From Klebsormidium nitens (lineage: Eukaryota > Plantae > Klebsormidiophyceae), in the NCBI GenBank assembly GCA_000708835.1, contig DF237003.1:108524-172523 (forward strand): 64,000 nucleotides of DNA, in the 5' to 3' direction. The notes beneath the pieces are model-generated. The model ran no database searches. It worked only from the letters and a program-made list of their open reading frames with translations, and had not been told where the DNA came from. The position numbers and the translations under genes were made by a program. This document shows positions 5,278-63,719 of this stretch, piece by piece (the first letter of the stretch is position 1; each line of letters starts with the position of its first letter).

Positions 5278-6518
5278 CACATGGATAATGCACTAGCTAT
5301 TACGAGCAGTGACAGCGAGCTTGTGTCCAGACTGCATTCCCAATGATGTGGTGCACTCTCTGAGAGCTGCAAGGATTATGGCCCCTCAGCAACATAGTAC
5401 TTATGCTTGAAGGGTAGGTGCATTGGGTGGACGAAAGCAAGGGCGGAAGTCCAGGACCTAGACCATTGATAGCAGGTTCTTTCACTCCTCATTCTCTCTC
5501 ATAGGACTGAAGAATTCTAGCAGATGACTGTGAACAGGCAAGGCCGGCAGCTACGTACCAAAAGATGCTCTCTTCCAAGCTTGGCACATTTGCCAACGAC
5601 ATCCTGCTCCATTCGCGCCAGCAGTTGTAGCCCGCTCTCATCTGTACTCATTGTCTTTGATCCAGCGGGCCCAGCTTTTCCAGAGGCCGCCATTGCTCTT
5701 GATATCTGGATCTGAGGTCTTTGCTGTAGCTCGTTCTCTCGTTATGTTTCCATCGACAAGATGATCTGCTGCTGGTCTCTTTATCCAGGGATCAACACCA
5801 CTCTGCTGCATGGAATGTCTGCTTCTTCTGCGTTCAGACTGATCGGTCAATGCATGTGTTGAAATCCAGTTTCGGAATCGGCATCTATGGATCCTCCATC
5901 CCTCACAAGCTCCCATATGCTTCTTTGGTGTACGAGTATATGTGTAGACCTTCACAGAAATTGGGACGACAGCCTGCAGCACATTGACGCAATGGGGCGT
6001 CAAACAACAAATTGTCGCACTTCTGTATTGAATTGACCTCTGGTGACGTCCATATCTACGTCCATATCTATCAAGAAATGGACAAGAGACCCATCTAATA
6101 ATTTATATCGAAGTCTGGCATTGGAATGGCACCAGTACCAGCAGTCCCTTGCAGATTTTAGGGTTCTCAAGGAGAACTGTTAACGGACTTGACACTGCAT
6201 ATATGGATAATGATTGTACGAAGCTGGTGCTGAATCTTGAGCGTTAAGATTTTTACAAGCGCGGTGCCTCGCATAAGCGCCTAGCTTCTTGGCTATCATG
6301 GTACGTACCTCATAGTTGGACCAGACATCAGCTCGTACCCTTGCACCCCATACAGGCACCAGCCGTCCGATACGAGTAGAGGCTATGAGCATCTAGGGGC
6401 CGTCCATAGAGATGTACCCTTCGATTGTAAGATTCGGACCGGCTCAATGTCCTGCTTATACGGTACCTGGATACCGGCCAGCTTGACCAGGTTCCAGAAT
6501 CCCATTCCGATCGATGTA

Positions 6519-6666
6519 GTGAACAGTAACAGGCAGTGAACAGTAACGGAGACGGGTAGGGTTAGTTAGGGGGTTAGGGTGGGTACGGGTGCGGAGCGGG
6601 TGTTTCTTTAGGTTAGGGTTTTTAGTAACCCCAAAATGCTTACTGTTCACTGGGCTTGCTGTTCAC
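6519..6666. repeat. Hairpin family copy 1: G-rich telomere-like core in 28-29-bp inverted arms, TA on both sides
   Basis: Arms GTGAACAGTAACAGGCAGTGAACAGTAAC (6519-6547) and 6639-6666 (rc GTGAACAGCAAGCCCAGTGAACAGTAAG). Core 6551-6625 GACGGGTAGGGTTAGTTAGGGGGTTAGGGTGGGTACGGGTGCGGAGCGGGTG...AGGTTAGGGTTTTTAG. Confidence 0.8.
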
Positions 6667-7677
6667 TAAGCTAGAATCCCTAGGCGCTGAGTAATGAATA
6701 CGGTATTGTAGGCACGTAGGCAGTGGCTACCGGTACCAATTTCAACTGTGCCGTACGAACACCTCGGCCAGGGCCCAGGATATGCCAAAAAGTACCCGTT
6801 TCGCCAGGGAGGAGCCGATTGTGAACATCGATGGACTCGAGCGAAGGAAAATAACCGTCGATCTGCTCGGTTGGAAAGTACGGTCGTCAAAATGGAAAGT
6901 TGCAGTGTGATCTGGAGACCGGACTGGTGTACCTCTTCAAGGGCCACCATGGCATGCATACCGGTATGGTGCGGTACCGCATTTGCTCGGCCTGGCCGAC
7001 GAGGTCGATCGGTCATGCAATGCATTGCGCCATCCCCGGTTGCGGTTCCTCGGTCCTCAGTTGATACAAGAGCTTCGTTGTGCAAAGCAAAATACCGGTC
7101 GGTTGGTACGTGTACCGATCAAGACCCACGTGAGCAGGTACCTATCGTCAAGGCTCCGGTACGTACGGGTCCATGTACAGTTGGCGGCCGTAGTACAGAA
7201 CGTGGGTTTAGCTTGACTCGCATCATCAAAAAGACAAATTCTCTGGATAATCATACGGCCGATGCTCGAACACCGTCGTAGATACGGCGATGGTTCTCAT
7301 CGGACCGATCAGACTTGGAGAGGGGCCACAAAGAGACGGGTTATCACTGTCATGGTTATCGGCATCATTTTCTGCGCCAACAACCACGTGCGCGAGGTAG
7401 AAACCTCGCGCATCGAGATTGCAAGCAGGGAAGCTAGGCAGGCTTGCATTTGGCAAGACCACTGCACTCGTGTTGAGGGCAAGGGGTGGAGAGGAGAAAG
7501 GGAAGCCATGGCTTCCACTTCTCCTCAAAAACTTGGCCATCCTGGCCATTCCCCATTCTCTTCTTCCATTTCAGGACCTTCCCCAGCCCCCAAAAGTCTT
7601 CTTCCGTCCCCCCAAACCTCTTTCAAGAAGCTTTGGGCTGCTTTCAGCTGGTTTGTGTGGTTTCGAGGCTTCTCGCC

Positions 7678-13600: not shown

Positions 13601-15388
13601 CCGCCAGAATCTGTGCCAAGGACTTGGACTGCCGCCTAGAATTGGACAGAAGTTCAGGTTTGTTTTCCCTGTTTGCAGGAAGGCGAGGAGGGAGAGGAGG
13701 GCGAGGAAGGAGAAGAAGGTGAAGAAGGCGAGGAAGGGGAGGAGGGAGAGGACGACGATGAGGGCGGAGAGGGATACGAGGGTAAGCATACCAACTTGTG
13801 TGACGATGTCCAGCTTGGTTGTTTTATGTCTGATGTTCACGCCAATCGCTGTAGATAGAGACAGCTTCCAAGATTTGACCGGAGTACGGCAGAGATCGTT
13901 TTGCCGTTTTTTGAGAGCATCGGGTCGGGGTTCTCTGGTATGTTCCAAGCGGCTATAGGGTCCTCTTGTCTGATCTGGGAAAGGTGGGAGTGTCAACGAC
14001 TGGTGTTTTTGGTCCAGGATTCGGACTCATCAAATGAACCCTGTACGAATCTGCTAAGGAAGCTTCTTCATGCGCGCCAGGAGGGGGTCGGTAGATTAAC
14101 CTCAAGAAAAATATTAGTAAGCCAAGATAATATTAAGCTCCGACTAACATTGAAATTCCTAACCCAGAACGACACCCGCTCTGCACCCGGAGCCACCCCA
14201 ACCACCACCCTAACCCTACCCGTCCCAGTTGGTTACCTTACTAAAATCTCGGCTTACTTTTATTTTTCTTGAGTTTGATGGTCGGTAGCTCCCACCTGGC
14301 GGCGGACGTGTACCCTTCTACTTTCTACCGACAATCTAGCCGTCGTCTGAGGCGCATCTCTGACCGGGTGATCTGATATTTTGCAGAAGAGGGTGGAGAA
14401 GGGGGGGAGGAAGGCGAGGACGATGACGACGACGAGGAGGGGGAAGAAGGGGAGGAGGGAGACGAGGGCGAAGAAGGTGACGAGGAGGAAGGCGAAGGTA
14501 CGTTTTGATCTTGCTTCCTTGTGCTTTTTTGTCGCACAGCTTACACGCGCAATTGTTTGCATCCAGCTTACAGTCGCTAATGATTTGGCATCCAGCTTGC
14601 AGTTGCTATTTTTGTCTGACGACTAGGAAGCCCCCGTCGAGGCGCTCCAGTTCGATTCATGGGCATCTCCGTCTGCACCCCCGACAGACCCTGCCTGGAT
14701 TGTATTTTATGAAACAAAGGCGAAGTTGGCAGTCTTGGCATTGAGTGCAGTCCCTGCTTCCGTTTTGGAAGCACAGAGGCTTTGCACCTGCAAGACTCGA
14801 AGTGATCGGACGACTCAATCTGCAACTCTAAGTCTTGCACTCTTTCTTTGCGGAAACATTTCTGCACTTGTTGGGTGTGTGCCTTCGCATGACGCGTCTG
14901 TACTTTCACAGGTGAAGAAGGGGAAGAGGGTGTCGAGTACGAAGAGGAGGACGATGATGATGACGACGACGAGGAGGGCGGAGAGGAGGAAGAGGTGCGC
15001 TAATCCAGTTCGTTGCTATTGCTGCCGTTTGATGATACTTCAGGCGGGTTGCTCTGGGCCCTAGGTATGTTTTGGTTGGGATTCTGTCCGCTTCTTCGGA
15101 ATTGGTCACTCAAGAGATATCTGACTCGTCTTGAGTGTCTTGCTTGGTCAGTCAGGCGACTCCGACGAGCAATACTCCGTCCTAATATGTGAGTCTTTCA
15201 GCATTTATTCTCTTCTGAAGTCCAATGGAATTCCAGAGTTTTTTCAGCTGCCACTGATCAATGGTCTTCCTATTTTCCAGGGCGAAGAGGAGGAGGGTGA
15301 TGAGGAGGGCGACGAGGAAGGGGACGAGGACGATGAGGACGACGATGAAGAAGAAGACGAACCGGCGCCCAAAAAGTCAAAGCACTAA
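7678..15388 (+). CDS. NOC4: Nucleolar complex protein 4 homolog (CBF/Mak21 domain) with ~150-aa acidic C-terminal extension, 16 exons
   Basis: Exons 7678-7992, 8882-8974, 9170-9240, 9531-9589, 9760-9802, 10015-10121, 10556-10674, 11152-11385, 11748-12006, 12375-12432, 12766-12871, 13074-13313, 13679-13781, 14387-14497, 14912-14994, 15281-15388. NOC4-typical motifs: LSDFLTDSYNLGGVVSVMSLDGLYTLITQHGLEYPDFYNKLYALL, LPAYLAAAFAKRMSRLAL, SLWEIETLRHHYCPSVSRF. Intron 1 has a GC donor (CAG|GCAAGT). Confidence 0.9.
14095..14279. mobile_element. Hairpin family copy 2 in a NOC4 intron: ~43-bp imperfect TIRs, C-rich core, 9-bp direct repeat GGTCGGTAG
   Basis: Left arm ATTAACCTCAAGAAAAATATTAGTAAGCCAAGATAATATTAAG; rc of right arm ATCAAACTCAAGAAAAATAAAAGTAAGCCGAGATTTTAGTAAG. 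Core CCTAACCCAGAACGACACCCGCTCTGCACCC...CCCTAACCCTACCCGTCCC. GGTCGGTAG at 14086-14094 and 14280-14288. Confidence 0.8.
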
Positions 15389-16099
15389 CTGTGTAATGGA
15401 AATTGTGAACAAAGATCCTTCTTTGGAGTGAAATAGAGTGTCTGCTGAAATGGTGAAGGTCGGCCTTGGCTACCATTACAGCGTGCATGGATGCAACCAG
15501 CAAGGTTGCATCAATCTAGTTAGTGAAAGAATCTTGGGTAAACGAGTCAGTCCTAGACCTATGTTTGGATCACATTCTGTGCTCATACCAATCGAAAATG
15601 AGTGTGCTTACCTCTGCAAAGACTTCTGGATTCCCCCCTGGCAACCATGAAATTGCCACATGTGCCAGCTGGATCCGAACAGGACAGTTGCATCACCTTG
15701 TGGTGTTATATACACTACCACATACTCAGTCACATCATGCTCGTCCATGCCTAGATTACACTTATGCTATCTCACGGTGCGAGATTGGACCGTTCAAACT
15801 TTAAAAACGATGCTGCAAGAGATACGTTTGCATACATGCAAGCCCATGGCCTACGCGCGCTTGTCCATATATATATGAAAAAGATATATTTGGGAATTAA
15901 TGTACGATACTGCCTAGCTGTATATAACCCGGGCAATCCTTGACCATGGAGCTTGCACGCAAGCGGCCGCGCGCATCATGCGTGCAGCTGCATGCACATG
16001 CATGCATATGGCAAGGATCCTGATCGAGTCGGACCCGCGGGACGGCCGCGCCCATGTGATTACTGCAAAGCCACCATGTGATGGCGTGAAGTAGACGTA

Positions 16100-17005
16100 C
16101 CACGGGACCGCTACGGCGCGACTTGCGGACCTCGGTCCGACCGTAATTTAGTTACGGTTTACCTCGGTCGGACCGAAAGTCCGCAGGTCGCGAGACGGTA
16201 AATCGACGGTGTTCGGAGGCAAAATTTTGGATATTCGGAGGTCGGAGTACGATCGCACCGAGGAGAAACCTTGGAATTATTTTTGGAACCTAGGAAAAAA
16301 CTCTAAAAAAAGGTAATTTGGCCCTAAATGTGAGCCAAGGAGGCAGCTATATAACATGCAAATCCGAGAGGAGGCAGGGGTGTCCACTTGGTTGGAGGTA
16401 GTCCAAGGGGTATATATCGAGTTGCAACTTTCCAATTTTCCGCCCCTGTCCCCAAACTCCATCCCAAGAGGTATTGGAAGCCATGGCCATGGTGGCTCCG
16501 TCCTTGGTGTAATTAACGCCATTGCAGCAAGGAACTCGAAGGTCCTCCTTCCTCATGACTCGAGGCCCCGTGTTTTCATGGTCTACCTACTTTTCAATCT
16601 CGGTCGTGGGTCTTCTAACCTGCAACGGGGCCTCTCCAGCCTCAACGCGTGTTGAGGTACCTGAGCGACTCATTCAAATCGTCGATAATGCTCTCATAAT
16701 TGTCATCGGACGGTAGAGTAAAGGGCGGTACCACCCGGTCGGGACCGTCTGGTCGCGATCGAAAATTTGTCGTAGGGCAGGGCCACGTCATATTCCGTAC
16801 AGGAATTGGCCCAGTTCACAGTATCGCCGAGTCGTTGAAATTAGTTGAAATTTTGAGTTGAAATTTAAAACCTCGATCCGGCCGCGGAAACACCGATTTA
16901 TCGGAGGTATACGGAGGTCGATAAATAGGTAATTTGCAGGTAGGACCGACCGGGTATCGAGGTAGAACCTGGCAAATACCTAAAACCGCCGTAGCGGTCC
17001 CGTGG
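16100..17005. mobile_element. Non-autonomous TIR element, 906 bp, flanked by TA
   Basis: Perfect 19-bp TIRs CCACGGGACCGCTACGGCG / CGCCGTAGCGGTCCCGTGG, with TA at 16098-16099 and 17006-17007. A subterminal ~26-bp-stem hairpin lies at ~16118-16192. No recognisable transposase ORF. Confidence 0.75.
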
Positions 17006-17388
17006 TATCTAGTTGTTTCAATGTTGCATGACGACCGGCGGCGGCCCGCGAGAACTAGTATATGGCCTATTGCACCATGCATGCATGGGTAATGCCCCAG
17101 TCGGACCCGCAATGATTGGCGCTCAGCTAGCGTGGCCTAACTTATTGCTCATAATACTGACGGTCACCATAAAATCTTACTCTAATAGAGCAGAAGTTTC
17201 TGCTCAGAAGCTCAACTAGGACTTGGTAACTGTTCACTTGGAATTGTGCACAATTTCCAAACACTTTGGCAAAGTCGAAGAGCATAACGCAAGTGTTCTT
17301 TCACGAAAGTGTCATGAACCTGACTAATTGGATTCCAGGACCATTTGTAGTCATTGGTCCAGTTGTGCAGCGTATTCCACCAGAAGGT

Positions 17389-20300
17389 CTAAGGTACAAT
17401 AGTCGTGACTCTTTGGATTGCTGCTTTCATAGCCTCTCGATCTAACGTAGTTTCAACCATCACCTCTTGTACCTGCAAGGTATTGGATACAGAATATAAA
17501 TTGTCTCTCACATCTGGCAAGTGTGGGTTTTGCGGTTGATTATAAGACCAGGTTCAAGGAGATGAATGAAGAGCAAGGAAGTGGAACTAAACGAACCCAT
17601 ATAGCCCGGACGACTAATGTCGTGAGCCATTAGTAACATGCACCATAAAGAAGGCGTCGAAGCAAACAGGCAAACCAATCTGATCGCATGGGAATCTGAC
17701 GAGTGTAAAAGCATGTGCTTTCACAGAAATTCAGCGAAGACATCCCTCTAATGTAAGTTGAATAGTAAGTTGAGAAGGAAGTCAGGAAAGAACCAGCCGG
17801 CTAGCGGCGGAATGTCAGAAGTGTTCCGTCACCCGTAAGCAATCCGCCAGCCAAATCACCGTCACAAGCACCTCAACCGATCAGGGTCCACTGCGGTAGC
17901 TTCGAAAAAGGCCACTTGGGGCAGATTCGATCCTTGGTGCGGTCCAGCGCATTAATCACCGATAAGGATTCACAGCAGAAATCTGATTGTTTCCATTAGG
18001 GTAACTCGGAAGTTGGTCAAGGCCTTACTTGGGTGGGGGCGAGTGCGGAGCACGTGAACCCTAGGTTTAGGTTCTTACTCAAATTTGGCTGTTACCCTTC
18101 ATGGCGCTTTCCTTAAGCAGAGTGAAACTTATACAGCTTCTCCCGAGCAACCTGCCAGTTTTAGTGGGAAACCTAGTGTGACTTCGTCGGTCTGCAACCG
18201 AGTGAGATCAGTCCGGTAAAGTTTTACACTAGAACTAGCAAAGTGCTCAGGAGAAGCTGTTTTTATTATTATTATTATTATTTTGCAAAGTGACTGTACC
18301 TGGCGGCCCGCGCGCGCGAGCAGGGTGTACCCGTTCTCTGCGGGCGCGTTGCTGAGCCACAGCTCGAGGTCCTGCGATACGACGCGCTTCTCCACCGCCT
18401 GCCGCCCCAGCGCCACCGACAGCACCCTGCGGGAACGAGCCCATCGAAGGTTTGCGTTTTCTTTCTTGTTCTTTTTTCCCTTCTTTTCTTTTTCCTTTTC
18501 CTTTCTCCATCTCTCTTTCCTTTTTGAGATAATATATTCTGAGCTCTTCCTGCGACATCTAGCCAACGACCGACAATCTGGTGTGCTGCCCTACGATTGT
18601 GATGCTCGGCATTCTGGCTCAACACTGGCCAGGAAACGGTTCTTAGAATCCTTTTCTGGGCCCGATGGTCGACCAGCGTCAAGAAGAGGAACACGAGGAT
18701 TCTTCCACTGACAGTCTGATGCACGTTTTAAGTCGTTGAGAACCGGAGTATTGAAGGTCCGCATTGGAAAAGGCGCGGAAACGAGGAGAGGCTGCGTTGG
18801 AAAGGGCCCATCTGACTGCGTTGAGTTGGGTGGGCTAACGACCTGGGACCGAAAAAGTGATGGTAAGGCAGGGAAGAAGGCAAGATTATCTTTAAAGTGT
18901 GCAGACGGCAACTAGAGCGGGGGACACTTACCCATCTTCTTTTTGGAGCTCGTTGCAAATGTCCTCCAGTCCCGGCAGCGGCAGCACCGCCAGCTCATCG
19001 TCAGTCAAGTCGTCGTCATAGCCGGCCTGCAACGACGGGCAGAGGAAAACGTTCACTTCAAGCAACTAGAGATGAGAGAAAGAAGTCCTGCTGCCCCGTC
19101 GTAGAAGGTACGTGGGCTGTCTGAAGGCCAAAGAACCCGTCAGATCGAGACTTCAAGCGACTAGATGCAAAAAAGAAGTCATGCCGCTTTAGGGCAGAGA
19201 CTTCTTCGGGTTTTGTCGTTTTTGTCGTCTGCAGAAATCTCTACGCGGCTTGAACGAGTGCGAAAGAGAGATGGGGTTAAATCCACGAGCAACATCAATT
19301 ATGAGCAGCAGGCGCGTCGTCGGTTAAGCGACTGGACTGGAACCTGAGGCAACTCGACTCAGCAGCAAAGTCGTCGAACTCATCATCACAGCCATCCACT
19401 AATGCAGCAGAGGAAAAGTTGGACCGCAGAAAAAAATCGGGCAAGGCACTACAGGAGCAAGCAACTCATCAGCCAACACTCATTTGAAGGGGCGACGGGG
19501 TAAGACAATGACGTCAACGCGGGCAGGTGAGCCCGACACGGTTGCAGCCTACTGGAAACGAAAGGTTGGTCCCAATTTCAAAAGGCTTGATTGGGTCTTT
19601 CCAACGCAGTCTCGGTCGGCGCTACTGCTACGATGGTTGACCACGAGATATGCTAAAGATAGCACACCAATTATGGAGAACCCCGACGTCAGGACGGGAT
19701 CTCGCCCTTTGCAGCATGAGCAATTACCATTCTCCTGTACTACAGCGAGGACCCTTGCTCGTTTGCCTACTTCAGCAGCCGCAACTCCTGCTGTCAATTG
19801 AAGACCGTGCGGATTGGAAAACTCTGCCTTACTGGGCTATTAAACCAGAACCGTTTTTTCTTACAAACGGCATCCTAGGGGATCATCTATTATGAGAACC
19901 GAGCCCCCCTCACCGGCATGATGGTGTCGAGCGTCTCGAGCAGCGGGTCGTTCTCGAGCTGCTTGAGCGACAGCGCGAGGCGCATGCGCTCCATGTCGAC
20001 ATTGACGACCTTCACGCGCACTTCCTGTCCGACCGTCAGCAAGTCCTCGGGGTGATGTACCGGGTCCCATGACAGCTCGCTCGTGTGAACCAGCCCGCTG
20101 ATTGGATATGACCCTGGGGGGCAGTTTTAGAACTTTAGCATGCCTCGGAGATGCAAGTTCGAAACTTTGATCGGACATTGTTGAAGTGTGAAGATATGGA
20201 GTCCTCGGGGTAATGCACCGGGTCCCACGACAGCTCGCTCGTGTGCACCAGCCCGCTGATTGGATGAGAACCTGGGGGGCAGTTTCGGGTTAGCAATAAG

Positions 20301-23300
20301 CGGGAAACCAATCTCTGATATCAAGCGGATGGGACTTTTTAATCTCGGAAGTTAGCGGTTCAAACGCTCACGATGGTGCACCGGGTCCCACAACAGCTCG
20401 CTCGTGTGCACCAGCGCGCTGATTGGATATGACCCTGGGGGGCAGTCTCACCAGATTTAAGCATGACTCGGAAACGCAAGTTTGAAAACTTTGAGAAGTT
20501 ATAGTCGAGGTGTACAGATATGAAGTCCTCTGGGTGATGCACCGGGTCCCGCAAAAGCTCGCTGGTATGCACCAGCCCGCTGATCGGGTACGAGCCTGGG
20601 GGCAGTCTCAAAAAGTGGGAATAAAGATTATCCAAAAATTACTTTTGCAATTAAGTTTAGCACAATGAACGCTTGACGTTGCACACATATTCCAAAACAG
20701 CTGCCCGTGTGTACCAGCCCGCTAAGTGGGTATGACCCTGGGGGCACAGTTCAGCAAGACCATGAGACACGATCTTCGGCTCTGTATCTTTTATGAAAGG
20801 GGTGTCAGGACTTGGCAACTCAGAATCCTTAAGATGGTGCGCTAAGTTACGGGACATCTCGCTCGTGTGCCCACTCATCGTGTATGACCTTGCATGATTG
20901 AGGGCCGCAGCTTTTGGAATCTGCAATGACTACTATCATCCTGAAATTATGTTGGGCTTGGTTTCCGGGGTGGTGCAACTCCTGCGTTCTGTCAGAGCTT
21001 GCTCGAGATAAACCACCCGCTGATCGGGCACGATTCTGGAGTTTTCAATGTTTAGCATGATCGAAAGACGCAACTTCTGAATTGAATCCCGAAATCTCAG
21101 TGATTGGTTTCTAGCATCCTACACGCTTGCAATGGTGCACTGGAATGTGAGGCAGCTTGCTTATGTATCAGTCCGCTGAGCGGAGTTTGACCGAACTTTC
21201 AAACTTTCCTGTGTCGGGATTCCACGAGGTCGGTCCTAGCTTTCAAGAACTCGGGATGGATGCAAAAAGAACAAGTAGTCAAAGCCGTATTCGCAGCTGA
21301 GCGTGAGTACAACGAGCATGGCCTCACCGTCTGGGAATTTGATGTCTACGAACGCCCCAAAATCCGTTAGCGAGTCGACTCTCCCCTCTCGAACTTCGTC
21401 GACTGTGAGTTGCTGCGCGGCCTCGATCCAGGCTGCCAACTTCTCTGAAAGAACGAAACGCCCCGCCTTCCGATTGACTTCGATCACCTGCAACAAGAAC
21501 TCCAATTTCTTCCTCAAACCTCTTAGAAACCGCTCTGCCTGACGGCTGCAAGGGCGTGCAATGATTATGCAGCAGCATTCGTATTTCTCGAATGTCATTC
21601 AGTCCAGTCTCTATTCGAAAACAGAGAGTCAAGGTAGATTGGCAACATGCATTGTAGTACGCCCAATGCTTGCACAGCCTTTAAGCACGATACATTCGCT
21701 TTGGGGGACGGACCCCGATACATTTGGTCGCCTGTATTGACTTGAACACCAGTTCTTCAACATGGGTGCAGATTGAAGGCATGTACGCTCACTTTCGCCG
21801 TGATCGTTTTCCCCACGAGCGATGCCCCGACTTCCGATAGACTCTTCGTCCCGTCATTCGACCGTATTTGCGAGAAGGGGACGAACCCGAGCAGGCTCCC
21901 GAGCTTGATAAGCACCCCCCCGTTATTGGCCCCCTCGACTTTCGCGCTGACTAGTTCCCCGCTCTCAAAGAGTTGCTGCGCGCTTTTCCAGTCGGAGTCC
22001 TTGGCCCGCTGGTTCACTTGCTGCTGCGATGCCTTGGGAACTCTCTTGACCGCCACCTTTTCGGAGTCTTGAACTCCATCCCCCTGAAAACAACGAAAAG
22101 CGAAACAGGTTACATGACATCTCCGCCCGAGGTGCATTTGAAAGATCCATGAAACCCGGTTGAATAGCAGAAAAACAGCAAGTTTTAAACGCCTCCAGAA
22201 GTTTACTTGCTGCTAGGATTCCTTGGAACCCTCTTGACGGCCACCTTTCCAGACTCTTGGACTCCGCTCCTCTGGAAAGACACGCCGCGAAAAACAGTGA
22301 CATGATTTTGATGCCCCAATGTATAAGTACTTATGAAGCCCCGCTAGATCAGGCCGGAAAAAAACGTTTGGAACTTTCCGTGTTACAAGTCGACGAGCGC
22401 TTCTCTTGTTGGCAATCATCGACATTCCAGAGTCATTTTTGGAGCGTTCTCAACCAGCTTTCTACCTAGGTACTCAAGTCTTTGTGCCAGGTGCCCTCGA
22501 CAGCATTTGATGAAAGCAGCTTGTGTGTCATTCCCACAGAAAGTACAAAAAGCAGGGCGTATTTCCGGCCACTCCCAGAATATAAAGACGTCCCCTCGCC
22601 ACTATTTTACACCCCTTCGGCCAATTGCAATGTCTACCGCCGATCAAGATTGAGGGTGTCAGCATCTTGTGTCTAAGGTCCTTCTCCGCCTGGTTTCTAG
22701 GCTGCCATCAATATTTGTCACCACCCTCAAACGATTTCCAGAACCGAGACTCCCAACCACTGGCCCACATTATGTGTTCTTGGACTGGCGCCACGCCTTC
22801 GACCAAGGGCAGTCACAGTGCCGGTCATGAGTGGGCTTCTCAGGTTCAATCATCGTGGCCTAACGACATGAGAGGAGCCTAAGGTGGGAGGGAAGGAGAA
22901 CCCTTCCAAACAAGACAATGGAGCATAAACCCTTCGGCCACATATTCTCTGTGAGGCAGACATCCCCACCCACAAGCGTGACTAAGACTTCTACAGCTAA
23001 TGCAGCAAAAGAGTGGCACCTTCAAAAAGAAGGGCGCCACAATGCACACACGACGCTCACCTCTGACTCTGAAGCTTTCGCGGGGCTCTGCACTTCCGCC
23101 GCACATCGTGCCCCCTTGCTTTGACTAGATAACCTCCCAGGGCGCCGGAGGAGCAAACATCTCAGAAGCGCGCATTCTGTTTCTGCATATCTGTCTGACA
23201 AGGCACCAAGAGGATGCAATTTTTGGGTTTTCCGCTGGCACACACGACTGGAAGGGAGGTGCAAGCCTGCATTGAGGAGCTGCGACCTGCAAACAACACG

Positions 23301-24044: not shown

Positions 24045-27000
24045 ATGGCTTCAGACCATCGAAGGTAAGCGCACAACCAATCCCTGCACCACCGCAATCA
24101 GACAGCCAAACTGTATATGCTGCAAGCTTTGCGGGAGTGAAGTGTCGTGAGAGTGTTTGATATCTTAAAGCAGCTCTTTTTCCCCCAACAACAGTCAACT
24201 CTGACATCTTAACGAGCTGACTACTTCATGAACGCTGACTCCTTGTAACTTGTAAGCTGATGCAGAGATGTAGCTGAGTATGCCAAATCCGCTCGCTCTG
24301 CCTGCAAAGGCTGCGGAAACAAAATAGAGAGGGACATCCTGCGAGTGGGGCGCGTCAGCAAAGGGGACGGCGGGTTTGATGTTACAAAGTGGTGAGCCTG
24401 TTCCCTTATTTCTTACCTCTTTCTTACTCCAGATTGACATTTGGGGTGGAATCTACATTTCTGGAGTAAGGGGATCCCCTTAAAAAGGCAGATGGACAGC
24501 CCCCACATCAGCCCATAGAGGTTGACACCTGCATGAGGATCAAGTGGATAAGATTGTTGGCTGTCTCTCTGCAGGTATCATGGCAAGTGCTTCTTCGACA
24601 GTGTGTCTCCTTTACCTGAACCAGAGAAGGTTGTGGGATTTGGCGCCCTTAAGTTGAGTGACGTTGATAGGCGATCTCAACTTTTCTCTAAGATGACTCG
24701 ATTCACTTACGCGTCTGCTCCCCCAAGTGATCAGAGGAATAAGAGGTATTGTGACCTTCGTGGCAATCTGAGATGACGCTCTGATTATTCTACGATCTTG
24801 GCTGCGAGCTCTGCCAGAGACACTCCCGACTTGTAAATGTGCCCCTTCCGAGTTCCTCTTCAAACACTCCACGCGCAAGGTCCCTTGCTGAGAAGGAGAC
24901 CTTGAATTCCACTTGTGTTCCTACACCTTCCTTCCATCGTTTCCCCTCTTCGTCGCTTCCTCATCTGCCTGGCAACTGTCTCCCTCTATGGCAATCTTCC
25001 TCTCCCGACTCTTTACAGGCCTCCGACCAAGCTCTCCTCCGAAACCTGGCCGTCACCCCCCCTGAGGAGCACATTGCGAAGAAGGCGCGAGTTGAGCGGC
25101 AAGTTCCCCTGCCGGCCGCTGTGGGTCCTGCTAGAGAAGGGGAAGCCTATCCGCCCTACGGAGAGGCCAAGTCCGGGGAAGGAAAGGCAAGGGGCCGGAC
25201 TCTCGTCAGAGCTTGTACCTCTTTTAGCAGGTGTTTGGGAGTTGATCGAATCTGACGCCTGGAGGCTCTTTTGCTGCCTGGTTTGGCAAGGACAGGCTTA
25301 TGGGTTCACAGCTCTTCATTTTTGGGGAACTGGTACCAATTTGGTACCGGTTTTCCAAAAGAAAAACTGGCTGATTGTGGTGGGGTTAGTTGTGGACCTA
25401 GGGTGGGGTTGGGCGGGCTAGTGGCTGACTCTCCTACATCTACCAAAAATCGCTTGGCTTATACTTTGTCCATAGCGTTTTGAATTTGGCAGGCTCACCA
25501 CTAGTGCACTGTCAGATTCAAGAGTCGTGAAGCCATATACGCTTGTCTCTCTGGTGTCCTCTTCGGGTCGAAGGTTGTTGCTGGGCTCATCGAGTCTCTC
25601 TCCAATTTCCTCAGGCAGAGGAGTACGATGAGGAGCAGTGGCGGGCCGCAGTCGAAAAGTTCTCCCACGACAAGCTGGCGTCTTCTTACAAAGTGAGGCG
25701 GCCACTCGACTCTGCCAAAGCAGATGTCGACCGCTTCAGTCTCTTCTTGTCTGGGGACTCTGCCTCGAACGAAGAATTTGTTGAGAATGAGCAGGAATCA
25801 TCGGGGTCTGCCCAGTGTGTCTCAAGAAGGGAGGCTGCTCGTGAGCGCACCAGCTTGGGTCGAGGAGGAGCAAGAATAGAGGGTGCTGCAATACGTGCTT
25901 CCTGCACGTTTGTTGTAAATCGGGAGCGCCATTGGTTGGTCCTCAATGACAGATTGCAAATTTTATCAATCTGCAGCCCGTTTTCCAGTCTCGATCAAAG
26001 CCTCAGATATTTGACGAAAGGAGGCCGATTTTCGTTTTCTCACAATTTCCTCTCATGGCCAGGGGTCCAGGCTGCCGGACAGGTGGAAAGCGTTCGAGAC
26101 CGTAATCATAGGGCAGGCAAGTTCTCCATTCTGCCGCAGATTTCTAAGAATTCGGCTTCCTTCAGCGCTCTTTATGCTTGTCATTACCTCCGCCATTGGC
26201 ATGCTCAGTCAGAACGGCAATCTGTACTCATTATCGCAATGCTATTCGGGTCTTCAGCTCAACTTGATTGTTCATTCGTAGTCTGGTGGAGATGGCCCAT
26301 TGCACCTGATGGCCGCCACAATCGCATGTCATGCTTGCACTCCGCTTGGTTGCCTGCAGCCGAGAAGCCCCGATCTCGCACTTACTGAAGCTCCCCTTCC
26401 AGTCGGTTATATAAGAACTCCACGTTTCTTGTCTGAGAATCTGCTCGTGACATTCCTTCAGCAGTAACCCGCTTCCCGGAGTTCTCTTTCTAGTATGGCG
26501 TGACATTCTTGCATGCAGAGACTCTTATCAATCTTTGTGGCCCTCTAGTGCTCTCAAGATTGTCATTGGTGACCCTTCTCGTCCGCCCGAAATACGATGA
26601 TTCTCGGTCCCCTTATAAGGGCCTCGTATCAGAGGAACCACTTATCCCTGACAACCCTAACCAGCAAACTTTACCCGCTCCGAACCCAGACCCTCAAAGG
26701 TATTCTTCCCGTCCCAGGCAGTGGGCGTTCGATTGTGTGGCTCCTTGGCCCTCAATATGTAAGTTCTTGAGATTTTGTCGAAAATTATTAAGATGCTTTT
26801 TGCTAGATTCGTACCAAGTAACCACTTATTCTTCGTCTCTCTTACCTTCTTCCGCAGTTGGGCGATCTGCGTACGTCCGAGAAGGTGGCTGCGTTCGACT
26901 TCGACGGCACTCTAGCCAACACGGCAGTGCGGCGGCACGGCGCGGACGCTTGGTCCCTCATGTTCCCCACGATACCCCAAAAACTGCAGCAGTTGCACGA

Positions 27001-30085: not shown

Positions 30086-33000
30086 TCAGGTGAGAACCGT
30101 GCCAGAGATGATCCTCCACCCCGCCCCTCGAATGAACCTCAGCTCGTACTTGGCCCGGTACTCCTCTTCGTAGCTGTCGATCGCCTGCTGGGATGCGTCG
30201 AACTCCGTTGCTCGCTCCTGCGAACATGAAGCGTCTGGTTTGTTGAATGTATCTCTCATCGCTTAGGCCTTCCAATTAATCACTTTCGCTGTGCGTGATT
30301 TTTAAGGGCGACAGACACACATGCTGATCAAGTGACACCCGCCCAGGTCGAAGAAGGATACTGTGAATCACTTTACGGTTTTGACACTGATTCAAGATAG
30401 CCTGGTCCGGTTACAGCCCACGTATATTGCGTACTCTTTGTGGACTACCGGACGATGTCGGACGGCAGAAAGGATAATCTCCGGACTCGGTGCATTTGGC
30501 AGTACTTTTCGCCGCTCTCCCTATTCCAATCCTGGCAACGTGATTGACGACAAGAGCTTCTACTCAAAACCTGAGGCAAACCAGATTTTATCTCCTGCCC
30601 AGGTCGAAAAGCAACGGAATCACGTCGAACTTCTGGTAACACCAAAAGTGCGGCATCGCTCGCCGTGTCTCAAGAAGGAAGGTCCTCGGAAGGGTTGTAA
30701 AGAAGCAGCTCACAATCAGATTTTACCATCTACCTGGAACTTGTTTCTTGTCTTGGCAACACAAAGATGGACAGAGATACTCAACGCCCGACTCAAACCA
30801 TAATCCCATGAGTTAGGTCAAAGCGCTAACCTGGAGCGTAACCCCAACCACGGCCTCCCTGCCCCGGTTGCTGACTTGCACACTCTCCACGTTGATTCCC
30901 CGCAGATCGTAATCCCACCGTTTCCCAGTTTTGCTGAAATCCCGCGCCCTTGCGGTCCATTCCGCGAGCATCGCGCCGTCTAACACATCCCTTAACCCGG
31001 AAATGTCTCCGCGGCGCCCGAGCGCTCCCGCTTTGGCCTTCTGCCACCGCCTTATGATGCCCTCCGCCAATACGCTATCCATCGGGGGCATCCGTATATC
31101 GACGTCCGGAGGGGTCATTGGCAAAGGTTTCGGAACGATCTGCTGTTGAGCGAGTTTAGGTAAGGGGGCGACGGTTTTGGCAGTAACGGGGGTTTGCAGA
31201 AGCTGGTTAGCGGCGGGTTTCCGTGAGGGTTTGAGAACGGCGGAGGCGATCGCGGCCACCAAAAGCGCGCCGCCCACCAAGATAACCACGTTGCTGCGGT
31301 TTTGGTATACCGGGTCAACCGGCTTGGGTTTGCTTGACACTGCCCCGTTATCCTCAACGCCCACGCCTGCCACGTCACCCCCTTCTGCCCCCCTCTCGAT
31401 CAAAAATCCGACCGTTGGTTCCGACTCCAAAGCTCCTGACGTTTCAGTGCCATCCATTTCGTCGCCAGTTTTGGCCGCCGTAAATTCGGCAAACCCATCG
31501 CTTCCCCTCGCCAAAAATCTCTCAAGGTCCAAATCCTTCAGCTTTCCGGTCGCTGGGATGCCCCTCGGCAGCTGCTCCGGGGGGGCCAAAAACGGCGGCC
31601 CTTGTGCCATACCGACCCCCCCGTTGCTGAAGTCTTCCCTTTCCTGGTCAATAGCTTCGGAACTCACCGAACCCCGACTCTGCTTCGCAACGTCGACTCC
31701 CAAGCTTTGATTATCCGATCTCATCCCCACTTCCCTCGTTTCGCTCCGCCCATCTAGTACGTTTGCCCCCCGCCACGTCTCCTCGACCGTATCGTTACCG
31801 CTCGCCGCTACCGTTACCGCGCTGGCCCTGTCTTTCAGCCCCGCCGCTAGCCCCTCCACACTCCGCCCGATCCACTTTATCGTTCGAATCGGTAAGCTCG
31901 CTATTCTCGCGGCAAGCCTCACCCCCCCTCGGATCGCTTTCCCAAACGCGAGCAGAATCGAACCCTGTTGCAGCTTCTCCAGATAGCCCTTCACGTGGGG
32001 GTCTTCGAAGTAGGGGATAATGGCGGAGTTGATTTGCGAGGCCTCTCGGTACGAAGTCAACAGGGCTTCCTTGAGCCAGCGCTCGAGAAGGGAGCAGAGA
32101 CCGGGGAGGAGGTCGGGGGACGATTCTGAGTGAGCGTAGACATAGTCGGCGATGTCGAGGCTACCTGACAAGGACAGATTGTGAGAAAGTGAAGATCAGA
32201 TTCCCAATCGTGTCTTTTCTATGAAAAGCCTCTCCGAGGCATCTCAAGTCCCCATACTGAGCCGTTGTGAGTGGAGGCTGCAAAAGTCGGTGGTCTCTTG
32301 AAGGTTTGACGGCGGTCGTAAGTCGGCAATGTCGAGGCTACCTGGCATGACAAGACAGTAGAATAAGATGAACAGCGGGTAACCCGTTCTCATAAAGGCC
32401 TCGCCGCCGCTTGCTAAAGCTTTGGTTGAAGCTATCTTCGGGGTAGCGTAGTTCGCGATGTCGAGGCTACCTGACACAACGAGAGGTGAGAGGAGCTCTT
32501 TACCATAGCCCTGGCATGACGAAAGATCAGAAGTCCGCTAGTGTTGCATTACCTCGTAAGGTTTCGCAAGCGAATGCTAATCCCACGGAATTTGCTTTCT
32601 TGACGAACACAAAGGGCACGTGGTTTTGGGCAGACTGCTGTATGGGTGGTCATGATTCTTGTGAATGACGTGGCCAACTCACGGAAAATAGCAACGGCCC
32701 TACACGTCTGAACTTTCATGGTAAAAAAGAAGCAAGCTTTCATTACATCAGGTGATCCAAATTGTTTAGACGACCAACGATGTTCCAAACAAAGAGTGCC
32801 CCTCGCACCCAACACACGAGCAATAGAAACAGGCCCACATATGCTTGAAACCCACTCACAAAATCAAACAGCTCTGACAAACCGACCTGCCCCAAACCAT
32901 TCAACATAACTCCGCACACATCAAACCAAACCAAGCTTGGTTAATCCGCTTGCTCCCAAACCGTTGAGCGTACCTCCAGAAATAAGAAGTCGAATAAGGA

Positions 33001-36000
33001 GTGCCCACCTGTCGGGGGGGTCGTGTTCAGCCCCAGGTGCGCCCTAGCGTCGTCCACGTGGCCGAGCAGGAGGCAGCACATGGCGCGCTCAAGTGCCACG
33101 TCAATTCGTTGAGCGTCCGCGGAGTCGGGGTCCTGCTGCAGCTCGCGCGCCAGTTTGGACAGAATCCCGTCCGCGTCCTGTCCGGAAATAGAGCGGAACA
33201 GATTCGTTAAAAACGGGAAGAACGGAAGAGACATGTGAGATGGAGCATTGCAAATAAATTCTAGTTGGAAATATAGTGGTCCTGCTGCAGCTCGCGCGCC
33301 AGTTAGACAGAACGGCGTCCGCATCCTGGCCGGAAACGGAACAACGGAAAAGACTTGCGAGAAACGGAAGAATGGAAGAGACCTGTGGGTTGAGCTTTTA
33401 AAACTGGATTCTGCAGTTCGGACAAATTTGCGTCCGCATCCTGGCTGTGGCGAAATCAAAGGGTATACAGTTCGAGAGTTTGGCGGATCTTTCGGGGACG
33501 AAGACAGATTGTGAAATCTTTCCTGAGGCCGATCCTTAGCGGAAAGAGCCGCCTTCTCTCCAACCTCTCCCGCGCTTCAAAAACACCTAGAAACAAGTAA
33601 CTCGATGACTTCTGAGATCCCTGGTACGTCAGATCTGACGTCTAGCCGCGTGCCATTTCGCGAGGCACCCACAGTCGGAGACATACTCGGCCTGACGTCA
33701 CAGTCCGCAAAGACGACAGTCAGATGAGCGTCTCGCCGGATGGATCGTGACCAGATGCTGACGTCAGCATGACGTCGGGGGCGCTTACCTCCACGAGCTC
33801 GGGCTTTCGCTCCATGAAGCCTTGCGCGATGTGTGCACGTGCGGCCGCTAGGAGCTCTGGGAAGGTGGGGGGGGGTCGGACGGCCGGTCCTTGTACAGAA
33901 CCACCTGAAAAAGGCGTCAAAAAAACCGGTCAAGGTAATTCCGTTAGAAAATTCTATTAGCCTTAATTCCTTGAGAAACCCATAAAGCCATAACCTCAAG
34001 AATGTTAATCAAGAACTTTTGGTAAAGAAATGGCGCGGGTGTGACCAGTGAAAGCAGAACACCACACGCTGAGTTTTCAGCTTACGGGGCTTCGATTCCA
34101 ACTACAGGCAGCAGGTTTACGAAGCCTGAAATTCATGCGGCGTGTGACCTTGATGGGCGAAGCGGACGGCAAGACCGTCCACCTTAAGACGAGGTCAGAT
34201 AGCACGAGGACCGGGTCACAACGAAACGCAGATTGTCTTCGGCCAGACCGGGAGGTTGAGTAAGGCTACTCAGGATTCCAGTCAGACAGACCTCGAACTC
34301 CAGTCGGCAGGTCCGTTCAGCGAAAGAAGTAGCCCAGAAACCACAGCCCACGCAGAACTATAGGTTAACACTTGAAAGTGCAAAGCCGTAAATGCGAAGT
34401 CGATTAAGCCCTCAAACGCCCGGGCTTGGCCCCATGTTTCTTGTGGCCGTCAGGTACTCTCACGCGCTTCGACGACAATCTATCTCGAAGCGAAAAGCTT
34501 CATCATTTCCAAAACTTGAATTCACGCTCGTGGATCAACATTATTCACCGGAAGATCCAAACTCAAACCGAGAGGCAGCCGCCATCTCGTACCTGCTCCG
34601 CGGCTGTCATCCGCGCGAACGCCGCCTCGGCGAAGTCCGCGCGCGACATGACGTCAGGGTGACGCCAGCGGCTCTCGGGCTCGGCCATCGCGGCGAGCAG
34701 CTCGCGCACCCCCGTGAGGCCCTCTTTCCGCGCGGGCGCGTGCGCGGGGTCTAGGGGTTTGTCCAGTAAGTCGAGGACGCAATAGGGGGCGAGGCTCGCG
34801 AGGGACGTGTCGATGCGCTCTTGGAGCTCAACGGCAAAGCCCTTGCCGCCTTCCTCCTGAAAGGGAAAGGAGTGGGGAGTGAAAAGGGGGTAAAACACGG
34901 GTTTGAGTTTTGTTGGTGGAGACGAAGTCAAATTGCTATGTGAGCATTCTGCAGCTCGACGGCGAAGCCCTTGCCGCCTTCCTTCTGAAAGGGAAAGGAG
35001 TGGGGAATGAAACGGGGGTAAAACACGGGTTTTATTCAAATTGGCGTACACGAAACTACCATGCGCATTGTGCATCTCGACGGCAAAGCCCTTGCCGCCT
35101 TCCTCCTGAAAAGGAAGAGGGTGGATCTTGGTAAGGGGGAGTTGAGGTTGTATTCTGGAAGCGTATACTTGCGAAGGTTTGACATGGAGCTTTAAACTTT
35201 AAGGGTTGCGGTTAAGGTTGGGTTGAGGCGTTCCCTAAGGGAGTGTTGGAAAGGGTTCCGTGCGGGGGACCATCTCGGAGGAGGTTTCGGGAGCTGAGGT
35301 GGGAAAGTTACAGGAGCTCTTTCTCGGGCACCTTAAAATCGCATCCAAGATGTTGCACGGCCAGTCTGCAGTTCATATCGTGCGAACATTACGGAAGTCG
35401 ACGATATACCATTCTTCCCCGCCTTTGTGACAACTATCGAACACTCCGTCGAAAAAAGACATCTTAGGTGCGAGGTTAACGGCCCGAGTTTGGGGCGGAC
35501 CCAGAAGGCTGAGACCAGTCTGGATGTTGAAAGCTGGTTTGAAGCGGACAGAATGAGGAGCGTATGAAGAATTGAGGGTATTCGGAGTGGAAAAAACACC
35601 AGGAGTTGCTTGAGAGTGGACGACCGTATTTTAGAGCGGAGGAAGGCGGGAATGAGGGGATCTTAAACAGTTCTGTGAATCCACGGGTTGACAAGATAGA
35701 AAAAGAACGGTGCCTCACATCATTGTCATCCGAACGAATCATCGTCAAGCACTGCACGATCTTTTCAGGAGCCAATGAATTTCGAGGGCGACTCGAAGCA
35801 TTACGGTGCATCGATTCCATGCACGAAAGCTATCGTTCTATGTCGTGGTCGAAGACACATTCGTTTCCTTCAAAGGCCGAATCAGAGGTAGGTGGAACAC
35901 TGAGATCCGCCAAAGCATTCAATCCGAACATTCTCGAGCCATCAAGTGCATAATCCTTCTGTATTCACCCGTCTGACGGTATTTTCGACCCAGCACTACG

Positions 36001-39000
36001 GATCCAGTCGACCACTTTGCATGCGTCTATCCTATCGTTTCAGGTGCTTGGACCCACCTTAGAGTGGTTCCAGCGCTCTTTCAAGCATCTCGCACACTCT
36101 GTCAATTGCGGGCAGATAAATCGACCTGTGTAATCTCATGTCGTTGGACCCACCTTGAGTAACTCTAGTGCTCGCTCAAGCATCTCACACGCTTTCTCCA
36201 AACACAGGCGGGCGTGTTGAGCTGATAGTTCGATGCCGTTGGAACCAACTTGAGTAGTTCCAGCGCTCGCTCAAGCATCTCGTACGCTCTGGCAAACGCG
36301 TTGTGTTGAAATAAACAACCGAAAACCATCGGACCCACCTTGAGTAACTCCAGCGCTCGCTCGAGCATCTCGCACGCTGTCGCGAACGGGGCCGGCGTCT
36401 CGTTCACGGCTTCGCGCGCAAGCTCCGTGAGCGAGAGGGCCATGGCCAGGATCACGTCCTGCTTGAACACGCGGTTCGGGGGGCGCTCCGCCAGGGCCGC
36501 CCGCCCCACCTCCAAAACCACCTCCTCCTCGCCTACCTCCTGGAATTTACGACATTGTTGTTCGGTTCGGTTCGGTTGATATTCTTCGATGTTCCCTCTC
36601 GTTCTCCCTCTCTTCTCGTCGATCTTTCCCCTTATTACCGTGTGTGTGAGTTTTGCACTCTCTATTATGGGGCTTCTGCCGTGCATCCTGACGTTGGACC
36701 TCCAGCACCATCTAGATGCTCCTTTGCGAGCAACAGAGGCGTGGGACAGAAATCGGTCTTCGACATCTGACGGCTTTGAAGGTTTTGAGGTAAGGAGGTT
36801 TTGGACATCTTAGGTGAGTGTCTCGATTGCATTGGGAACCAGGCTGTGTCTCCAGCATTCCTCTTCCGGTAGCCCTGTTCTGGATTCGCAACGGGGTTCC
36901 ATTTGGGTCACAGCGGGCCTGCCCAGAAACCCCCAGGAATTCAGACTGGCGCCAGGATCTGACCCCTTCTCATAGTTGCCTGCTTTCAACAAAAATAAAT
37001 GGAGGGAGAACATGGACTCCCGAACCAACATTCGAGACCCCTCCTAACCATTATCCTCTATGACCGACGGTCTGAGCTGAGCAAAACCACCAAACCTGAC
37101 CGTCGGTTGCAGGGGTCTTAGTTTACGTGGGTACCTAGGGAGTCCACCGGGAGTCCCAGTTCTCCTTTCATCCTTTCTAATAACAGAGGCAAATGGGAAT
37201 CCCCAGTTCCTTTACCTGCAGCAGTGCGAGCGCCCCTGGCAGCTGCGACCACGGCACTTCGACTAGGCCTACGTCGTTGTTTTGGACAGCGATGTTGTAG
37301 CTGCGCCGAGCGTCCGAATTGACCAGCAAGTTGCGCGCAATCTGCGGGCGAGACGAGACTATTACACTCTCTGAGGCTTCGAACGTGCTTTAAGTTTGCT
37401 CTGTGTTGTACTTGAAAAGTGGTGCCCTATTCCGAGGAGAGGGCTCCTGAGAAGGCATCCCTTGACTTCACGAACCATTGGGGTGAGGTGGATACCTGTT
37501 CAAACCGTGGCTCAAATGGAGAAACTTCTGCAACTGTTTGGATATGAAGTGTGTTTCTCCAATCAAGGCTCTGAGCAGACCGTCCAAAGGGCTGTGAAAC
37601 GATGACTGCGAAGCAGATTTACGAAAAAATAAATACCTCAAAAATAGGACAGCAGAGGTTGGAACTTTGGCGAGCATGAGGACTCGCTCCAGTGGATAGC
37701 CTAACTTTCAAGAAAATCTTTTATGCATGGCTTTTCGATTGCTGAACCCTCTTACCGAAGAGTCAAAGCCAGATACAGAAATATAGCCTTCACGGGACCT
37801 TGAGATCTGTAGAGCTCTATCAGCAAATATCCCAAAGAGTTGTTTTTAAACAGAACAGATGCACGCAGAATTCCTTGTGACTTTAACTCAAGAAGGAAGG
37901 CCGGAGAAGATCAAGCAATGAGGCTAAGGGCTACTTTCTACCACCACAATATAGAGTCAACCAGATTGCATTGCTGCGTTAAAAGGTAGCTGCGCTTTTG
38001 AAGCCCCACAACTTTGAATTTAGTAGACGATCGCATTTTGCGGCCACAAAATCCAACCGCCAACTCTGGCTCCAACCGCAGTGCTTCATATCAACTCAAA
38101 GCTTTATTACCTTACCTCCATATTTTTACCACCCATCTGAAGTGCATGAGAAGCAACTTGTAAAATGTGGTGTCAACGAGATTGTAAATTCTCAACCTGA
38201 ACCCATCAAAGCCACCGCCCAGCGGCTGCCCTTCCGCCAACCCAGCAGAAGCCTGCTTCGTTGCATTGACTTCTCAATTTTTCACCACCACCACTTTTTT
38301 CTATAATAGGCATTCAGCTTGCATGTAACGCCCGCTTCTGTTGCCGCTGAAATATATATAAAAAATTGAACGAGTGCACGGCCCACCATTGAGTCTCGCT
38401 TCAGTGCCAGCATCCAGATGGATATAACAAATGACTACCCACCAGTAGCACCAGAAACGCTCGTCTTGACCACCGCAGGGCTTAATCCGATAATGTTGTA
38501 TTGCTGAAGATTTAACAGCTTACGCAAAGAAGCAAAATTTTTCTGGGCGGACGGTAAAAAAGGGGCTAAGCGGTTGTTGTTGTTGGATGTTGTTAAACAT
38601 GAATCAACCGATCGCCGCTAAGTTTGATGGGCTCATGCAAAGAAGCAGACTTTCTCTGGGCTGACGGTAAAACAGGCGCCACGCGGTGGCTGTTGTTGGA
38701 TTTTATTAAACTCGAATCAACCAATCGCCGCTAAGATCAAAGGGCTCATGCAAAGAAGCAGACTTTCTCTGGGCTGCCGGTAAAACAGGGGCCACGCGGT
38801 GGTTGTTGTGGTTGAATTTTACATCAAACATGAATCAACCAATCGCCGCTAAGATTTAAGGGCTCATGCAAAGAAGCAGACTTTTTCTGGGCTGACCGTA
38901 GAACAGGGGCTAAGCGGTGGTTGTTGTTGAATTTTACATTAAACACGAATCAACTAATCACTACTCACCAGCAAAAGTTCCTCTCGCGCCGCCAGCGCCG

Positions 39001-39520
39001 ACTTGCTGTACGGAGCCCCATCCCCCGGCACCTCACGCACTCGAGCCTCATAAGCCCTCACAATCTTCTCGGGCAGCGATGACTTGTCGGCTTGGAGCGC
39101 CTGGTAGTAATTGATGGGCAGCTGGATGGTTTTGTCAGTGGCGGCCTGGGAGATGAAGGGTTTCAGAAGCGCGCGAGGCGGGACTGGGTTGCGCGGTGGG
39201 AACTTGGGTTTCTGCTCGTGCTTTTGAAATAGACGGTTCTTTTGTGCAAAGCCGGTGCGCAGTAATGCATGTTTTTGGAGGTGATGGCGGTCGAGCTTGG
39301 GACGCTTAGCATTGTTAATCGGCGCAGTGCGCAGATTTGCCACACCAGAGGGTGAGATTTTTGGGGCGTAACAGCAGTGGTGTTGATTCTGAGGGGAGAT
39401 TGAGCTATTCAAACGAAGCCCTCTTGTATTCGAGCCGTTTTCACTTACTCTGCTACCAGCAATTTTTAGGATGGAGCAATCATGAGTCCTAACCAATTGG
39501 CCGCCAGCATTGAGAGCCAT
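30086..39520 (-). CDS. ARC6: Plastid division protein ARC6 (Ftn2 family): J-like domain, transmembrane segment, DUF4101 C-terminus
   Basis: Exons 38969-39520, 37216-37341, 36339-36539, 34593-34856, one or two short exons at ~33.8-34.2 kb (boundaries unresolved), 33009-33177, 30831-32164, 30086-30217. Motifs LPINYYQAL, EVPWSQLPGALALLQ, FKQDVILAMAL, AFARMTAAEQ, ERAMCCLLLG, TM VVILVGGALLVAAIASAVL, AEGIIRRWQKAKAGALG, YRAKYEL...WRII. Confidence 0.9.
36040..36338 (-). repeat. Three decayed ~95-bp-period copies of the ARC6 exon-3 end plus donor
   Basis: GGACCCACCTTGAGTAACTCCAGCGCTCGCTCGAGCATCTCGCAC (real junction at 36331) recurs at ~36241, 36146 and 36050. Confidence 0.85.
38500..38960. repeat. 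Tandem repeat of four ~115-bp units in ARC6 intron 1
   Basis: Marker GAATCAAC at 38601, 38714, 38832 and 38947. Shared block GCTAAG...GGGCTCATGCAAAGAAGCAGACTTT.TCTGGGCTG. Confidence 0.9.
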
Positions 39521-63595: not shown

Positions 63596-63719
63596 TGCAG
63601 GGGAACCATCTTTAGCCCAGGGAGATGGGGTTGCTGCCAGGAAGGTCAATCAACGTCATGGTAACCCGACTTTCCAGCTTAGCTAGCTTTGCCTGAGCAA
63701 GGTTGCCACATAGCAGGCG

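Follow-up and report, generated by a model that had tools for sequence, protein, structure and literature searches.

A sequence conserved in its middle and variable at its ends raises the question of what kind of element it represents. The window studied here is a 64,000-nucleotide stretch of Klebsormidium nitens scaffold DF237003.1. It is intron-rich green-algal DNA, and its Pfam-checked open reading frames contain exons of ARC6, NOC4/CBF, NAR2, an aspartic protease, PTPLA and S1. The ARC6 exon agrees at 99% with ARC6 of K. nitens, and over 23.7 kb the sequence is 100% identical to the DF237003.1 locus of assembly GCA_000708835.1. A sequence-only reading of the window had marked five loci that share a core of about 75 bp between inverted arms peculiar to each copy, and had proposed either an undescribed non-autonomous element or a structured RNA or single-stranded DNA module. 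Having examined the core, the arms and the insertion sites, we conclude with a probability of about three in four that the loci belong to a non-autonomous, foldback-type MITE group of the Mutator (MULE) superfamily, 145-200 bp long, in which the docking sites have diverged and the core has stayed conserved.

The common core, some 75-80 bp long, was borne out, with 72-78% pairwise identity among the copies c1, c2 and c5 listed below. Its similarity is more than low-complexity noise: the local alignment scores of these three cores are 86-99, as against a mean of 25-29 and a maximum of 41-45 for dinucleotide shuffles (z 14-15). The other strand of c1, c2 and c5 carries eight GGG tracts, where up to seven had been counted before, and G4Hunter maxima of 1.7-2.1 on the core predict G-quadruplex potential. 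Invariant columns make up 19 of 26 G-tract positions and 25 of 49 other positions (p 0.09). The central 16-mer hardly varies in its loop letters either, so that a sequence-specific site would be at least as likely as a G-quadruplex for the function of the core. The supposed telomere-like character of the core proved superficial. No TTTAGGG or TTTTAGGG unit is present in six cores, and the telomerase of K. nitens synthesises TTTTAGGG (PMC3622300); the core is thus not telomeric DNA of this alga.

All five loci named earlier were detected by the core, and two decayed ones that had been missed (c6 and c7) bring the real total to seven. The density of core loci is 7 per 72.6 kb of K. nitens and 1 per 61 kb of SRR23617307, another Klebsormidium isolate; this last locus, on contig L010, is referred to as the L010 copy. 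Across all Klebsormidium DNA fetched, the central 16-mer (up to 2 mismatches) was found exclusively inside these elements. No further copy of the element occurred in 46.6 kb of one SRR23617307 contig, and the core was absent from 71 kb of more distant relatives (JGI and ENA metagenomes). A strict pattern scan gave no match in the metagenomes, and a looser pattern gave seven, all of which were chance or plain telomere runs; pattern scans of the viral and bacterial genome collections gave none. A literature search found no paper describing this element family. The copies, with their target site duplications (TSDs), are as follows.

6504-6671, minus strand: c1, complete, 168 bp, intergenic, between the TPR gene and the NOC4/CBF gene
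6546-6624, minus strand: C-rich core of c1, from the profile of the core
6504-6547 and 6639-6671: arms of c1, the former full and the latter shortened
6495-6503: left TSD of c1, 9 bp, one mismatch to 6672-6680
6672-6680: right TSD of c1
14095-14279, plus strand: c2, complete, 185 bp, inside a NOC4/CBF intron
14095-14137 and 14237-14279: arms of c2, with the core at 14150-14229
14086-14094: left TSD of c2, perfect, 9 bp
14280-14288: right TSD of c2
17979-18117, minus strand: c3, decayed or deleted relative, partial core at 18026-18077, ends uncertain
26596-26780, plus strand: c4, decayed, inside a PNKP-like gene, core at 26649-26722, ends approximate
about 56985-57123, minus strand: c7, decayed relative without a TSD, core interrupted by a local duplication
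62034-62111, minus strand: c6, decayed core, missed by the sequence-only reading, arms not recognisable
63762-63960, plus strand: c5, complete, 199 bp, arms at 63762-63804 and 63918-63960, core at 63830-63908
63753-63761: left TSD of c5, 9 bp, one mismatch
63961-63969: right TSD of c5
L010 13668-13811 (SRR23617307): the L010 copy, in an intron whose K. nitens orthologue is empty
54070-54144, plus strand: empty orthologous site of the L010 insertion, at an intron 3' end of the aspartic protease gene

The intact elements are thus short (144-199 bp) and non-coding. The ends first given for c2 (14095-14279) were right, whereas c1 really spans 6504-6671 and c5 63762-63960; the outer hairpin at 63720-63983 around c5 is target DNA. 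The study set comprises the four TSD-bounded copies (c1, c2, c5 and the L010 copy), one per arm type. In both c1 (6639-6671) and the L010 copy (13798-13811), the arm that lies on the 5' side when the C-rich strand is read has become shorter or has nearly disappeared, with the TSD intact. The flanks of c6 (61999-62025 and 62140-62162) form an imperfect direct repeat of about 22 bp, longer than a TSD. Several candidate relations were rejected. The idea that c5 and c6 are the two ends of one 1.9-kb element fell because c5 has its own TSD, and the C-rich array at 53777-54122 is not a family member but a set of duplicated intron 3' ends. An orientation bias in introns (c2, c4 and the L010 copy have the C-rich strand on the sense strand) was dropped, since c5 is opposite with respect to the adjoining minus-strand open frame and the numbers are small. 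A kinship of the c2 and c4 arms through a common CTCAAG word scored 22, within background.

The inverted arms stood up to comparison with random sites in part of the set. The arm scores of c1, c2 and c5 beat 99% of random window sites, whereas 50% of random sites score as well as the arms of c3 and 72% as well as those of c4, and c6 is likewise at background. Neither c3, which retains just the inner TAAC sites and a short stem, nor c4 has a TSD; in c7, one arm-like stretch keeps the element spacing, with a unit match of 11/12. That the arms differ between copies was confirmed (30-58% identity between copies, 67-76% within a copy), and the inside-out conservation, in which the core is kept and the arms vary, holds for the intact copies.

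Despite their differing letters, the arms share one anatomy. In c2 and c5 they measure 43 bp and extend right up to the TSDs, and c1 has one full and one shortened arm. Position 1 is an A in all six intact arms, and TAA(C/G) stands at positions 24-27 and 40-43 or 41-44 in the same six. Read inward, an intact arm begins with some 11 terminal bases. A 16/17-bp unit specific to the element comes next, twice in the same orientation; it comprises 12 variable bases and a closing TAA(C/G). The pattern TAA(C/G)-N12/13-TAA(C/G), ascribed at first to both arms of c1 to c4, is complete in c2 and c5, present at three of its four sites in c1 and absent from c3 and c4; among the window copies, TAA is intact at 11 of 12 sites.

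The spacer bases do change together, as had been noticed: of the 26 positions that are paired in both c2 and c5, 16 hold different pairs. The comparison of units, however, gives this covariation another meaning. Outer and inner units of the same arm match at 8.0 of 12 bases, pairing partners at 9.2 and the other unit of the opposite arm at 7.8, as against 3.24 of 12 between elements (permutation p 3e-4). Because units of the same arm are alike yet cannot pair with each other, the covariation reflects four repeated protein sites and not an RNA stem; mismatches between arms show no G-U enrichment on either strand. Comparison of the two arms within each copy shows 27 differences over 118 positions, and comparison of the TSDs shows 2 over 36 (Fisher p 0.026). 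Since the arms are more different than the TSDs, they were already imperfect at insertion, so that frequent arm-to-arm conversion, part of the earlier proposal, is weakly disfavoured as well as not needed.

Evidence for insertion came from the borders. Duplications of 9 bp lie exactly at the arm ends of c1, c2, c5 and the L010 copy, matching at 8/9, 9/9, 8/9 and 9/9 positions, respectively. The spacing of c2 (TAA(C/G) at 24-27 and 40-43) predicted an end at 6504 for c1 and ends at 63762 and 63960 for c5, and the TSDs were then found there. The chance of such a TSD at one specified end pair is 2.2e-4, a figure that applies to predicted positions alone, since 51% of random sites yield a 9-mer with one mismatch when the search is unconstrained. 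The intact arm of the L010 copy keeps the element spacing. Moreover, once the L010 copy and one of its two duplications are taken out, the sequence that is left lines up gap-free with the K. nitens orthologue near 54070-54144, and also with a neighbouring duplicated intron-end unit; the K. nitens site at 54070-54144 is a true empty site. Conversely, SRR23617307 is without c1, c5 and c6 at the syntenic places. For c1, the element is absent there and the alignment breaks at the TSD, the flanks being too diverged for the exact empty site to be read. Collectively, the elements are mobile insertions with a 9-bp target duplication, fixed end geometry and four element-specific units.

The target sites have features of their own. 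Small hairpins of older origin surround both c2 (14075-14301) and c5 (63720-63983). Pre-insertion sites fold better than shuffles in three of four cases (p 0.033, 0.003 and 0.053; c1, 0.66; combined 0.0016), in a test with n=4 that was chosen after the hairpins had been seen. The elements may prefer hairpins as targets or may have become nested in small elements of other kinds.

The suggestion of a non-autonomous element with four short protein-binding sites is therefore upheld, with the sites still putative, and it is sharpened by the 9-bp TSDs, the empty site, the spacing and the four similar units. TSDs of 8-10 bp mark MULEs, and judged by TSD length and end anatomy only, membership of this superfamily is likely. 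A short non-coding body, TIRs and TSDs, the ordinary features of a MITE, are all present, as are TIRs made of subterminal tandem repeats, a feature of type 2 foldback elements, in the form of two 16/17-bp units per arm. MULE TIRs are typically longer than 100 bp, though not universally, and the arms here measure 43 bp. A TIR sequence common to the members, another ordinary MITE feature, does not extend across copies, although sub-families may have one; one copy per arm type was seen. Two TSD-bounded copies with one shortened or missing arm also count against the MULE reading. The window open reading frames tested, in a large-frame scan that covered the window outside 13900-19700, gave no transposase Pfam match. 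The elements are not of an undescribed kind, then, but work like a Mutator foldback MITE; they do not form a novel class of element, RNA or telomeric structure. The MULE and MITE families described so far have common ends and a varying interior, the reverse of the pattern here, and this too speaks against the MULE reading. Inside-out conservation and four-site ends that appear to be rewritable would set this group apart from them.

If the MULE reading is right, an autonomous MULE elsewhere in the genome would supply a DDE transposase in trans. The transposase would bind the four units, two per end and about 1.5 helical turns apart, pair the ends, cut at the first base and insert the element with a 9-bp stagger. 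The copies would represent different lineages, whose partner transposases, all of one clade, would read different 8-12-bp sequences before the common TAA anchor. When the specificity of a partner transposase shifted, all four units would change together, and the spacing and TAA anchor would stay common. As less supported additions, the G-rich core may aid movement or persistence, either as a site for a host or element protein or as a bendable or G-quadruplex spacer; alternatively, recombination and the replacement of ends may have moved one successful core from lineage to lineage.

Several other explanations were weighed against this reading. Mobilisation of the same anatomy by another DDE superfamily (Merlin, hAT/P-like, KDZ or an unclassified algal DDE) is unlikely, although it deserves more weight than the rivals that follow. 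The c1 duplication is readable as 8-10 bp, and the ends begin A(T/C), unlike the G-rich ends that are common in MULEs. On the other side, the duplications of c2 and the L010 copy measure exactly 9 bp, and subterminal 16-bp units fit foldback MULEs. The duplications reported for other superfamilies also count against it: the hAT TSD is predominantly 8 bp (PMC5499845), Zisupton makes one of 8 bp, and fungal Kyakuja one of 7 bp without TIRs (PMC12730594). Another explanation, which we consider improbable, holds that copies drift singly and that their arms are kept symmetric after insertion by conversion between arms or units or by template switching. It would account for the unit sequence that each intact copy has of its own, and re-symmetrisation of TIRs is documented for maize Mu (PMC10401008). 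However, arms differing by 23% beside TSDs differing by 6% (p 0.026) argue against recent homogenisation, and drift would not keep the cut-site distance and the TAA anchors, which are conserved across copies and strains.

A selected stem presenting a G-quadruplex or i-motif loop, the other half of the original proposal, is more improbable still. The intact copies fold with z-scores down to -9.5, differences between c2 and c5 are compensatory, the G4Hunter maxima reach 1.7-2.1 and G-tract columns are slightly more conserved than others (19/26 vs 25/49, p 0.09). Nevertheless, pairing cannot explain direct repeats within the same arm, and neither strand shows an excess of G-U among the mismatches. 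Nor does a G-quadruplex call for loop letters as constant as those in the central 16-mer. There is no Rfam match, and the TSDs and empty site speak of DNA insertion; the module idea is not supported. Least credible of all is a SINE-like retroposed element, a HUH/Helitron-type element or a telomerase-derived scar. One-sided shortening in c1 and the L010 copy resembles truncation, and TTAGGG-like words occur; against this stand the fixed 9-bp duplication and two-sided inverted ends, the lack of a poly-A or simple-repeat tail and of a tRNA or Rfam head, and a core without the K. nitens telomere unit. A SINE would have a tRNA, 5S or 7SL head, a 3' tail and TSDs of variable length, whereas TSD length is constant here. 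Helitron/HUH insertion leaves no such fixed duplication, which the 9-bp TSD and empty site contradict, and this whole reading is already largely refuted by these two observations. A sigma-70 scan gave nothing relevant.

Among the closest known systems is Muta1, a MULE of Aedes aegypti: a 10-bp motif at its end precedes 12-bp subterminal repeats separated by linkers of 3-4 bp, and its TSDs measure 8-9 bp (PMC5499845). Its repeats promote transposase binding, cleavage and excision, and one repeat per end suffices (PMC5499845). Each of the Aedes MULE families carries its own 9-15-bp repeats, and TIRs are shorter than 60 bp in 2 of 14 families (PMC5225508). The K. nitens elements thus resemble Muta1 and its type 2 foldback derivatives in the TSD of 8-9 bp, the short terminal motif and the tandem subterminal units with a 15-16-bp period; in Muta1, too, units are family-specific and derivatives with few units still move (PMC5225508, PMC5499845). 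They differ in having two units per end and 43-bp arms where Muta1 has nine units, and in sharing the core and TAA anchor but not the units, whereas Muta1 derivatives share their ends and vary inside.

Maize Mu/MuDR, with its cycling between heteromorphs and homomorphs, offers a second likeness in its 9-bp TSD class and diverging TIR lineages; Mu elements exchange TIRs, regenerate symmetric ends and keep the interior (PMC10401008). Maize TIR clades, however, are 65-83% alike and best conserved at the binding site (PMC10401008), whereas the binding-like units of K. nitens differ, with a match of about 27%, and conservation falls on a non-coding core of 75 bp. By analogy, a Mu-like TIR swap with re-symmetrisation may be one route by which a core outlasts its ends, and selection on the core may be another. 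In being short, non-coding and dispersed in introns and between genes, with inverted ends and a TSD, the elements are like Tourist, Stowaway and Mutator-type DTM MITEs, from which the inside-out conservation across copies and a TSD of 9 bp, not TA or TTA/TAA, separate them. Like the IR/DR Tc1 elements such as Sleeping Beauty, they have four transposase sites (putative here), a directly repeated pair in each of the inverted ends; Sleeping Beauty has a TA duplication and a site spacing of about 200 bp, as against the 9-bp TSD and 16-bp spacing found here.

The window holds other inserted and duplicated sequences. A small TIR element at 322-600 has 26-bp arms, 10-bp internal repeats and a perfect 6-bp AT-rich duplication, and a 910-bp element at 16098-17007 has a perfect 21-bp inverted repeat and is readable as TA-flanked (a Tc1/mariner-like MITE). 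Three more unrelated inverted-repeat elements (18133-18260, 18788-19613 and 51717-51977) have no clear TSD. Introns made of tandemly duplicated exon/intron junctions lie at 20004-21042, 32144-33445, 34822-36388, 38482-38959, 53777-54122, 54899-55285 and 57620-57870, and duplicated junctions occur also at L002 2141-4171 and L010 9440-13674; junction duplications have arisen independently in the same genes of other Klebsormidium isolates. ARC6 (30813-39520, minus strand) is publicly annotated as two genes, an Arm_PDR part and an IMS part, and is probably one gene split by such introns. A 338-residue open frame at 62593-63609 (minus strand) contains four 19-residue repeats and has no Pfam match; the sole relative found is the syntenic frame in SRR23617307.

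A bolder extension of the MULE reading, tentative at best, is that the core is a portable, selected module, either a host-factor site or a G-quadruplex, and has outlived one shift in transposase specificity after another. The lineages would rewrite their four units in step with the DNA-binding domain of their transposase, with TAA and the spacing fixed. Were this so, the copies would represent a natural series of matched pairs of transposase and site, and would be the first MITE group to owe its identity to a conserved function of the interior and not to its ends; such a group may also prefer hairpin-forming targets. With four 16-bp units, a fixed anchor and fixed spacing, the elements offer a compact and countable system for the co-evolution of transposases and end sequences. 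If the core proves to be required, the interior of a MITE can be under stronger selection than its ends. For K. nitens itself, a model charophyte alga, insertions of the family bring a near-invariant 16-mer, together with a potential G-quadruplex, to introns and promoters.
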